Below are positions 27,101 to 30,100 of a stretch of DNA of 64,000 nucleotides, piece after piece. Below the pieces are notes generated by a model. It did not search any database and was not told where the DNA came from. It worked only from the letters and a program-made list of their open reading frames with translations. This stretch comes from Octopus bimaculoides. Lineage: Eukaryota. The stretch is taken from positions 135,542,210-135,606,209 of the forward strand of contig NC_068983.1 of the NCBI RefSeq assembly GCF_001194135.2. The letters are read 5' to 3'. The first letter of the stretch is position 1, and each line of letters begins with the position of its first letter. The translations under genes were made by a program, and so were the position numbers.

Positions 27101-30100
27101 ATTGATTTAAGCTCTGAAATGGTTATCTGGTTAGCTTTCCTTATATTACTGTTTTAGTTCAAAATCTTAGTCAAGGATGCTGTCAACATAAAAAACAAGT
27201 TTCCCTGTTAACTTTAACCAATTACCCAGCATTACAGGTTTTGCTTTTTCAGCAAGACACAAGGTTCATGTGGGAAGAAGTAAAAAATATATGGTCAGGA
27301 GATGAAACATTAAAAAAAGAGTAGTATTAAAATATGTACACATCTATGTCTAAAAAACTAAAATTATTTCATCAACTTATTTGGAAAGAACTGGTGTTAA
27401 AATTACTATTTATCCTAGTCAGAACAGGTAAAATTCCTACCTTAACAGGAAGTAGTCAAAATCTAAACATTATGCAACTGGCAACTGTTAGTCAGTCAAA
27501 GATTCAATTAAAACAATTGTTTTGTTGATTGGTTATTTTTACCAGATGGCTGCTGAACGTCAAGTGTATCAGTCATTTTATATGTATACACACATCGTGT
27601 GTGCCTGCACGTGTACATGTTTTGAAAATTGCAAGTTTATTCAGTTTTTAAATTAAATGTAAAAAAAAAAAAAATCAATGATAATAATAGTACATATTTA
27701 ATTAAAAGTAAAAATGTTAGTGTTTTTAAAATCTAACAAAAAAAAAAAAAAATCCCAATAAAATAAAATGAAAACCTCACTAAGTCATAAGAAAAAGAAT
27801 AAAGATTTTTTATCATTGAATCAATAAATACCAATATTCAATACAGAACAACATGGAGTTGAAAAAAAAAAAAAAAATTTTGTTTGAATTTTTTAAGATT
27901 GCTGATTTTAAAAAGCTGCTTTATCTTCAAATAATGTTTGAAAAGAAATGGAATGAAACATTGACCTAATTAAGGTGAAAGATTTTAATCCTACCTGAAT
28001 CGTTTTAGATTAAATGTGCTATATGCAGGATTGACTAAGAGACATAGCAGAATAAGATTTATAAAAAATAAAGTAACATAGTCAATTACAAGAAACCAAT
28101 ACAAAATTAAAAGCAAGTGATAGGATTGAGGAAATGAGAAGGAAAATATATAAGCTATGACAAGGATGAAAAGAAGGAAAATATAACAGACAATGAAAAA
28201 AATGATAAAACACAAAGCAAAACCTATTAAAAGTAATATCAAAGTATAAAGCCAAAATACACAATTATTTTTGTAAAATGGCAAACCAATATTTTGAAAT
28301 GGTGTTTTTAAGAAAGCAATGAAACCAAGAAAAAAAAAGGTGCAAGATATCAACCTTTACAATCTTCAGTGTTAAATTGCACACATGAAATCATAACAGA
28401 ACAAAGTGTGTACATGTGTGTGTGTGTGTGTGTGTGTGTGTGGGGGGGGTGTGTGTGTGCATGAGTAAGAGATGTTAAACTGAATGTTAAAGCAAAGATG
28501 TGAAAGACAACAGATTTATAGATTGAATGTGAAAAAGGAGAAGAGGAGTGAGGGTTATTTTCAATTAAGTTACAGATAACAACAAAATATAAAGAACAAT
28601 ACTGAATGTTCCAGAAACTTACAGATGAAAGCTAACAGGTGAGGAGGACAAGGGTGGTTAAAATAAGGTGAAATGATGTGTAGAGGGAGGGAAAGAAAAA
28701 ACAAAAACAAAACAACCATGCCTGCTAGGTGCTGAAAAGCTAAAGAATGTCGGGGCAGGAGTGTGTGTTAACCCAGCAACCAACCTGTATTCTTCTTGAC
28801 CTGCTGTGTCCAGAATATCCAACAGACAAGTATCCCCATCTATGACAACCTGTTTTCTGTAGGAGTCCTCTGAAAAGGAAAAAAACAAATTAACAATGAA
28901 ATTTAGCCAACGTTTAAAACCAACCTGTATTCTTCCTGACCAGCTGTGTCCAGAATGTCCAACAGGCAAGTCTCGGAATCAATAACAACCTGCTTTCGAT
29001 GAGAATCCTCTGAAATGCAAAGATACCAAAGTTGAAATGCTTTTCAAAGATTATTTGAATATAGCCTCACTATAAAGAATGTCAATAGGGACCAGGGACA
29101 AGGACCTCAGCTTACATCCATCTGTGTAATCACACTGTCACCTCTATCATATTGGCTCTTGCTGCTCCTCAAAAATTGATGCAAGCATCTCTTCCCTTCA
29201 ATCCCCTTTTGTTTAATCTCTTACACCTTTCATCTAAATATTCTGCTTTAGAATTTATCCCCACTATATTGCAGAAACCCAAGCTGAACATTAGCTCTAC
29301 CCAGATACTATTCTGAATGTAAGATGAACTTGAAAAAATGTAAACATGCACTGACTTCTTAATTTAAAGATAAAACCTTTTTTTACATTTGCCATAGGTA
29401 TTGGGAGCATTTATGCTATCATAGATAAAAAATAATTTTTTTTGACAGTACTGGAGTTATTGCTAATAACTAATGCAATGGCCTGTGGGTGAGATGTGAG
29501 GTTTCCAATGACTCAGAAAGTGCCAAAAAATTTAGTCTTTTTTTTATGTACTGCATTAGTGCATGTATATTCCTTTGCAGCAAACCACAATTCATGCACC
29601 CATACCCATTTTAATCAATTTGATAATTCATAAAACTTTTAAAAGCTGATGGTGTGCCATAATACTTTTTAATGCCTTATTCAGAGGGTAAGAATAAAAA
29701 AAGATTGAAAAATGCTGTCCTAGAGAGATAAAAGGTAAAGTCCATCCTGGCAGTATTTGAATTTGATAAATAGAATTGCAAATTAAATACTAATCAGATA
29801 AGCAAACATTTCTGCTAAACTCATACCTTTATAAATATATAATACTTTTTTCAAAGCTGGTTAGCCAGTTTCCATGGTGTACAAGTGACCAAGACAACAG
29901 CATTCCCTTAAATGGGATGCTAGTCCATTGCAGAGTTCAAGTTGATTACATCAACACCAGCACTTGACAGATATTTTATCAACTCTAAAGGGTCGAAAGG
30001 CAAAGTTGATTTCAGTAGGATTTGAACTCAGAACGTAAAGAGATGAAAGAAATGTGCTAACATATGTGCCACATGCTAATGATTCTGCCAGCTCACTGCC

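Follow-up and report, generated by a model that had tools for sequence, protein, structure and literature searches.

On the minus strand of a 64,000-nt stretch of Octopus bimaculoides DNA (the window; NCBI RefSeq assembly GCF_001194135.2, contig NC_068983.1, forward-strand positions 135,542,210 to 135,606,209), a Ras gene carries two homologous exons, 4A and 4B, separated by a spacer of only 55 nt. Our data show that these are a real mutually exclusive exon pair produced by tandem exon duplication, with one of the two exons present in each assembled transcript. Their homology is evident from equal length (85 nt) and phase 1, from 69 identical nucleotides out of 85 and from the fact that only 3 of 27 full codons differ; the duplicated unit spans codons 37–65, running from the last part of switch I through the interswitch strands into the first part of switch II. 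The gap between them is more than chance and lies far outside the intron range of this gene, whose six other introns in the window measure 1.26–17.5 kb. As to what enforces the choice, steric exclusion is the best-supported mechanism and probably the correct one, with the frameshift caused by splicing errors acting as a predicted safeguard through nonsense-mediated decay (NMD). All statements about the sequence were recomputed by script, and exons were located by tblastn with cellular H-Ras, each match then being read.

Both products of the pair are already known in RefSeq as isoforms X1 and X2. The B product of the window is identical to GTPase HRas isoform X1 of O. bimaculoides (P0121), found also in O. 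sinensis and Argonauta hians, and the A product is identical to isoform X2 of O. bimaculoides and O. sinensis (P0122); a published description of the two Octopus Ras isoforms was not found in our literature searches. When isoform A was searched against a collection of 5.8 billion proteins, the cluster representatives were only canonical Ras, and the closest cluster was opened member by member. A further pair in it, P0124 of the B type and P0125 of the A type, comes from transcript-length Logan contigs, and two of the runs behind this pair are Sepia esculenta RNA-seq (PMC10141105, PMC6906322). Sepia A- and B-type contigs differ at 18 positions, all within the 85-nt exon, while the rest of the coding sequence and 86 nt of 5′ untranslated region are identical. 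Since the differences are confined to the exon, they show directly that one gene is spliced in a mutually exclusive way. There are four A-type contigs, three from Sepia (SRR9970004, SRR8281662, SRR8281691) and one from a third lineage (SRR27666078, L004) that departs from Sepia at 27 positions beyond the exon. B-type contigs number 15, and the ten examined come from ten runs other than the A-type ones, so different samples assemble different forms. Within the RNA-seq series SRR82816xx, two runs (SRR8281662 and SRR8281691) assemble A only and seven assemble B only. This split suggests sample- or tissue-specific switching and not a constant minor isoform. Exon 4B appears to be the major form.

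The spacer leaves little room for splicing between the two exons. An earlier note on this DNA had described 55 nt between the two exons, which we reproduce exactly, with candidate branch points CTAAA (28906–28902, A at +22 from the 4A donor) and TTAAT (28893–28889, A at +35 and 20 nt from the 4B 3′ splice site); both were found again, and TTCAT (A at +28) is an additional candidate. In Sepia the predicted candidates place the A at +23, +30, +37 and +41. As the 4B branch point must fall inside the spacer, it can be no further from the 4A donor than 35 nt in Octopus and 41 nt in Sepia. A distance from 5′ splice site to branch point below ∼50 nt is a documented steric limit on U1 and U2 assembling at the same time (PMC7969005, which cites Smith & Nadal-Ginard 1989). 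Exclusion in alpha-tropomyosin, alpha-actinin and OGDH is accepted to rest on close spacing of this kind (PMC7969005), and steric hindrance is among the listed general mechanisms of mutual exclusion (PMC3585155).

From this geometry we infer the following sequence of events. With the 4A donor bound by U1 and the 4B 3′ splice site by U2/U2AF, 22–41 nt apart, no productive spliceosome would form across the spacer, and the two would probably be unable even to co-occupy the RNA, so that one exon would be defined per transcript. Given long flanking introns (6.8 kb and 17.5 kb) and exon definition, U1 at the 4A donor and U2/U2AF at the 4B acceptor would compete for overlapping space, and the same long introns would let either exon join e3 and e5. 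The winner would probably be set by unequal acceptors, with 4B as the default, together with conserved regulatory sequence that includes a GCAUG island downstream of the pair.

The splice sites themselves bear on this last point. Both alternative donors are GTTGGT and the other five in the window are GTAAGT (four) and GTAAAA (one), as the earlier note had stated. Its description of the twin donors as weak, however, is not borne out: CAG/GTTGGT agrees with the consensus at 7 of 9 positions, like most donors of the gene, and its U1 duplex of –8.0 kcal/mol, a crude measure, falls between the values of –6.8 and –9.1 that bound the gene's other donors. What is unusual are positions +3/+4, which are kept in all four copies examined and suggest constraint. 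The conserved asymmetry is rather in the acceptors, weak for 4A and strong for 4B. In Octopus and Sepia alike exon 4A has the poorest pyrimidine tract of the gene (14/20 pyrimidines, longest run 5) and exon 4B one of the best (17–18/20, run 12–13), which fits 4B being the form assembled more often. An incompatibility of U2 and U12 sites, as for JNK1 exons 6a/6b, was considered and rejected: all donors are GT and of the U2 type, acceptors are YAG preceded by pyrimidine tracts, and an RTATCCTT donor is absent.

The arrangement is shared with cuttlefish. A query with genomic reading frames found a Sepia genomic open reading frame (ORF) running through exon A, spacer and exon B (P0126), and Sepia genomic contigs of ∼3.4 kb (L015–L018) carry an exon A equal to that of the Sepia transcripts, a 56-nt spacer (GTTGGTTTTCAAGTGCTGCCTAAAAATTCATTGTTTATTTATTTTTTCCTTTTCAG), exon B and the second GTTGGT donor. 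The comparison of spacer length across cephalopods, which the earlier note had put forward as a check, thus gives 55 nt in Octopus and 56 nt in Sepia within the same layout. The two spacers align with 44 matches over 57 columns (77% identity). Their first 9 nt, with the donor, and last ∼35 nt, with branch region, tract and AG, are conserved and the ∼12 nt in the middle vary; by this pattern the spacer is a minimal package of two splice sites. Over the 3.4 kb, only ∼280 nt around the pair and a 40-nt downstream island can be aligned between the two species. Of the flanking intron, alignment is limited to ∼40 nt on the upstream side of exon A and ∼90 nt past exon B. The length of the spacer seems to be constrained in evolution, at 55/56 nt while other introns are kilobases long, and the tandem duplication of the exon would have taken place before octopus and cuttlefish diverged. 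Their split, the deepest among coleoids, dates by our own estimate to ∼250–300 million years ago. A calibration of 174 million years has been applied to a shallower, decapodiform node (PMC6906322).

Conservation takes a different form in each exon. Exon 4A has 12 nucleotide differences between Octopus and Sepia, and 10–12 of 85 among Octopus, Sepia and the third lineage, all of them synonymous, and its peptide is identical in the three (27/27). This identity in spite of synonymous change indicates purifying selection on 4A as coding sequence. Exon 4B is identical at 84 of 85 nucleotides between Octopus and Sepia (L015 2334–2418), with synonymous sites essentially frozen; taken together, the other coding exons reach 87.1% identity between the same species, and the excess in 4B has a binomial P of ∼1e–4. 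We looked for a local RNA fold as the cause and found none that was significant (z-scores –0.8 to +0.3). Two metagenome scans, one with the A-donor/spacer/exon-B pattern and one with the exon-B core, gave no match.

Since 85 is not divisible by three, a rare transcript with both exons, or with neither, is thrown out of frame and runs into a stop in e5. The stops claimed in the earlier note were reproduced: inclusion of both exons leads to TGA at 11253–11251, 70 nt before the next junction and with three junctions downstream, and skipping of both reads GTG CAA TGA, with the stop at 11278–11276, 95 nt before the next junction. On these positions the frameshifted mRNAs are predicted to be targets of NMD. 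Double inclusion and double skipping give the same frameshift in Sepia. Retention of the spacer gives the in-frame TAA that the note had placed within it, but this stop is confined to Octopus, being absent in Sepia, and so is not a conserved design feature. Retention in Sepia (L015 2193–2418) joins exon A, spacer and exon B into 226 nt, adding 141 nt in frame and free of stops; the resulting 232-aa Ras ORF with a 47-residue insertion is not in the protein collection. The arithmetic of the proposed frame logic is likewise right, but the length behind it was inherited from an ancient invertebrate Ras exon and did not evolve for exclusion. Exon-sized genomic ORFs of invertebrates from many taxa (P0246–P0291) have the same Ras exon boundaries, so the 85-nt exon predates the cephalopod duplication, and the frame logic is then a by-product of which exon got duplicated. 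None of these ORFs has the His40/Ser48 version, and a protein search specific for exon A returned only canonical single-exon Ras ORFs of other invertebrates and no more A-type genomic copies.

Products that combine, skip or fuse the exons were also looked up directly. The A+B, skipped and retained-spacer products of Octopus and Sepia, with and without the N-terminal extension, have no exact match among ∼15 billion proteins, and an exact look-up gave no record of the window's own ORF through the spacer and exon B. The 90% protein cluster of the Ras isoforms holds only A-type or B-type forms. The missing aberrant products are consistent with strict exclusivity.

Steric exclusion, as proposed in the earlier note, is thus upheld by the geometry, with a candidate branch-point A at most 35 or 41 nt from the donor, and by the conserved spacer. 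Several points nevertheless count against it. The ∼50-nt threshold was measured in vertebrate systems and the host here is a mollusc, and the branch points in the spacer are predicted from sequence. The spacer comparison covers two genomic lineages only, and part of the conservation in length is due to conservation of the splice signals inside. Since the retained spacer of Sepia has no stop, NMD cannot police retention there. The missing aberrant products are a weak negative, because rare or NMD-degraded species stay unassembled and the look-up needs the exact sequence. Finally, flies and nematodes routinely splice introns of 50–60 nt, and no figure for the minimum intron length of cephalopods or molluscs, or for the shortest spliced cephalopod intron, was found in the literature searched.

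It could be argued from these last facts, from the complete set of splice signals inside the spacer and from a frame logic that is real and conserved for double inclusion and skipping, that the spacer is spliceable by intron definition, and that exclusivity comes mainly from frameshift, NMD and splice-site competition and not from a steric block. We consider this unlikely. A distance of at most 35–41 nt from donor to branch point is short even for fly introns, and the lengths of the gene's six other introns in the window (1.3–17.5 kb) speak for exon definition elsewhere in the gene. The A+B product is absent from the protein collection by exact look-up, and a short spacer conserved between genomes with otherwise kilobase introns suggests selection on length.

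Pairing of the RNA has also to be weighed. No GCATG occurs within 300 nt of the two exons except in the conserved island downstream of 4B, where it has the orthologous place in Octopus and Sepia. The island is a candidate splicing regulator site with an Rbfox-type motif and/or a candidate pairing partner of 4A. In a docking-site/selector scheme the island (UAGCAGGCAUGGUU) would pair with the middle of 4A, or more weakly with the paralogous part of 4B, to loop out or mask one exon. The island is conserved in an otherwise diverged intron, and the best duplex partner of its core (TAGCAGGCATGGTT, 28727–28714) in the local pre-mRNA (2.4–3.4 kb) is the same exon-4A segment in both species. Duplex energies with exon A are –15.5 (Octopus), –17.5 (Sepia) and –20.2 kcal/mol (third lineage), compared with –11.7 kcal/mol for exon 4B, and the four exon-A substitutions within the helix all keep the pairing. 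These energies, however, are only 1.2–1.8 standard deviations better than the best match of shuffled cores; the changes in the helix, from a comparison of two sequences, are four one-sided transitions compatible with wobble and none that is two-sided; and the regional fold (351 nt) has a z-score of –0.7. The GCAUG motif may instead mark a protein-binding site, and taking the island for an enhancer bound by an Rbfox-type protein fits equally well. We therefore give pairing a low probability as the basis of the exclusion. A vestigial third copy of the exon was also considered for the island and rejected, as the only matches were T-rich and of low complexity.

That 4A is a decaying or noise duplicate, or a pseudo-exon spread by automated annotation, so that only 4B matters and the spacer is a functionless relic, is very improbable: its acceptor is the weakest of the gene, fewer contigs carry it (4 versus 15) and it has His40 in place of a switch-I residue reported to be strictly conserved (PMC9882654), but a peptide kept identical in three lineages under purely synonymous change, full-length A-type transcripts as the assembled form in four independent runs, and a reading frame and both splice sites intact in the Octopus and Sepia genomes contradict a pseudo-exon.

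With steric exclusion as the preferred mechanism, the pair can be set beside known systems. It resembles alpha-tropomyosin exons 2/3, alpha-actinin NM/SM and OGDH 4a/4b in that the downstream branch point is too near the upstream donor, and OGDH also in that the intron has been held short over long evolutionary time (PMC7969005). Those vertebrate introns are longer and have the branch point unusually far from the 3′ splice site, whereas in octopus and cuttlefish Ras the whole intron is 55–56 nt, the predicted branch site lies an ordinary 20–33 nt from the AG, and the host is a mollusc. With FGFR2 IIIb/IIIc the pair shares an exon length that is not a multiple of three and errors that both lead to stops well upstream of the last junction; the difference is that spacer retention in Sepia Ras escapes the NMD logic, and that NMD in the Ras pair is predicted only. 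Alternative exons of small GTPases include the duplicated exon of RAB6A/A′ and the last exons of CDC42. Tandem homologous exons that yield two proteins a few residues apart are seen in KRAS 4A/4B as well (PMC9882654). KRAS 4A/4B and CDC42 alter the membrane-targeting tail, however, while the cephalopod swap concerns the effector loop and interswitch. Dscam clusters and 14-3-3xi, with their docking sites and selectors, offer a likeness to the island, namely a conserved intronic element complementary to sequence at the alternative exons. In Dscam exon 17 pairing and steric hindrance act in combination (Yue et al. 2013, cited by PMC7969005), a precedent for a short spacer acting with pairing. The Ras island differs from such systems in having its partner inside an exon and not in an intronic selector, and its support from shuffled controls and covariation is weak.

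The features on which these statements rest are collected in the table below. The window covers most of the gene, eight coding exons being identified; the first coding exon (MTEYKLVVVG) was looked for and is absent from the 64 kb, and the annotated gene spans ∼130–158 kb in O. bimaculoides, O. sinensis and Argonauta hians, with ∼150 kb in the two Octopus genomes. It is the single Ras gene of the octopus, K-Ras4B-like with a polybasic CAAX tail, under the RefSeq label 'GTPase HRas'.

Table 1. Exons, splice signals and conserved elements of the Octopus Ras gene in the window
Feature	Positions	Strand	Description
Exon e2	49381–49333	minus	49 nt; donor GTAAGT
Exon e3	35815–35787	minus	29 nt, constitutive; ..FVEEYDPTI + G of codon 37; donor GTAAGT; joins 4A or 4B
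Exon 4A acceptor region	29010–29032	minus	ACTTTGGTATCTTTGCATTTCAG; 14/20 pyrimidines, longest run 5
Exon 4A	29009–28925	minus	85 nt, phase 1; (E) + 27 residues + (S); His40/Ser48 variant of switch I and interswitch
Exon-4A segment complementary to island	28960–28972	minus	GACTTGCCTGTTG; candidate long-range pairing, suggestive
Spacer	28924–28870	minus	55 nt, GTTGGTTTTAAACGTTGGCTAAATTTCATTGTTAATTTGTTTTTTTCCTTTTCAG; 4A donor, ∼12 variable nt, 4B branch region, polypyrimidine tract and AG
Exon 4A donor	28919–28924	minus	CAG/GTTGGT; identical in Sepia
In-frame TAA on spacer retention	28903–28905	minus	Octopus; absent from Sepia
Candidate 4B branch points	28889–28906	minus	CTAAA, TTCAT, TTAAT
Polypyrimidine tract and AG of 4B	28870–28888	minus	TTGTTTTTTTCCTTTTCAG; strong
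Exon 4B	28869–28785	minus	85 nt, phase 1; (E) + 27 residues + (S); canonical Tyr40/Gly48 version
Exon 4B donor	28779–28784	minus	CAG/GTTGGT
Conserved intronic island	28714–28750	minus	35–71 nt downstream of 4B donor; ..GCTTTTCAGCACCTAGCAGGCATGGTT; Sepia L015 ∼2459–2498
Exon e5	11283–11181	minus	103 nt, constitutive; donor GTAAAA; carries premature stops of both error products
Exon e6	9917–9878	minus	40 nt; donor GTAAGT
Exon e7	5418–5258	minus	161 nt; donor GTAAGT
Exon e8	3105–3046	minus	60 nt; polybasic tail, then stop

Other features of the gene were noted. Two of its constitutive exons are very small, 29 nt (35787–35815) and 40 nt (9878–9917), with adjoining introns of 1.3–13.5 kb. Between e7 and e8 a CAAX-like ORF on the minus strand (∼3464–3520) ends in CKML with an upstream cysteine, reminiscent of a palmitoylated tail of the HRAS/KRAS4A type. 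It was considered as a KRAS4A-like alternative last exon and rejected; the ORF is probably due to chance, since its sole in-phase AG has no pyrimidine tract and it has no transcript. In the bivalve Mya arenaria a protein named 'GTPase HRas isoform X3' (P0018) has Leu27 in place of His27 (QNLFVEEY). Codon 27 in Octopus is split by the e2/e3 intron, and the Leu27 form may point to an alternative exon, or an alternative junction, in a second mollusc.

The two isoforms differ by His40, Ser48 and Glu49 in 4A against Tyr40, Gly48 and Asp49 in 4B. At residues 40 and 48 the 4B form is the canonical one, and it has Asp49 where most Ras proteins carry Glu. Switch I and II are reported as strictly conserved in eukaryotic Ras by a survey of Ras evolution, which finds a single Ras gene in invertebrates (PMC9882654). 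Tyr40 is central among the residues that contact effectors. Its mutation is known to redirect the choice of effector: the Y40C mutant activates PI3K and not RAF1, RALGDS or RASSF5 (PMC5147862). A wider reading, possible but tentative, is that coleoids have kept, probably for more than ∼250 million years, a splice switch in which Tyr40→His, Gly48→Ser and Asp49→Glu yield two proteins with different effector preferences, much as Y40C does. The switch would be sample-specific and set by the GCAUG island, perhaps through pairing with 4A, and its control would extend to the frozen synonymous sites of 4B.

Judging by the sequences compared, the His40 alternative exon that seems to be conserved across coleoids is the most interesting biological aspect of the locus. 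The pair offers a clean invertebrate case of the textbook rule that exons lying too close cannot be spliced to each other, with deep conservation of spacer length, and it could serve to determine where the steric threshold lies in a mollusc. Should signalling differ between the two isoforms, splicing would have diversified Ras output in cephalopods, where gene duplication did so in vertebrates.

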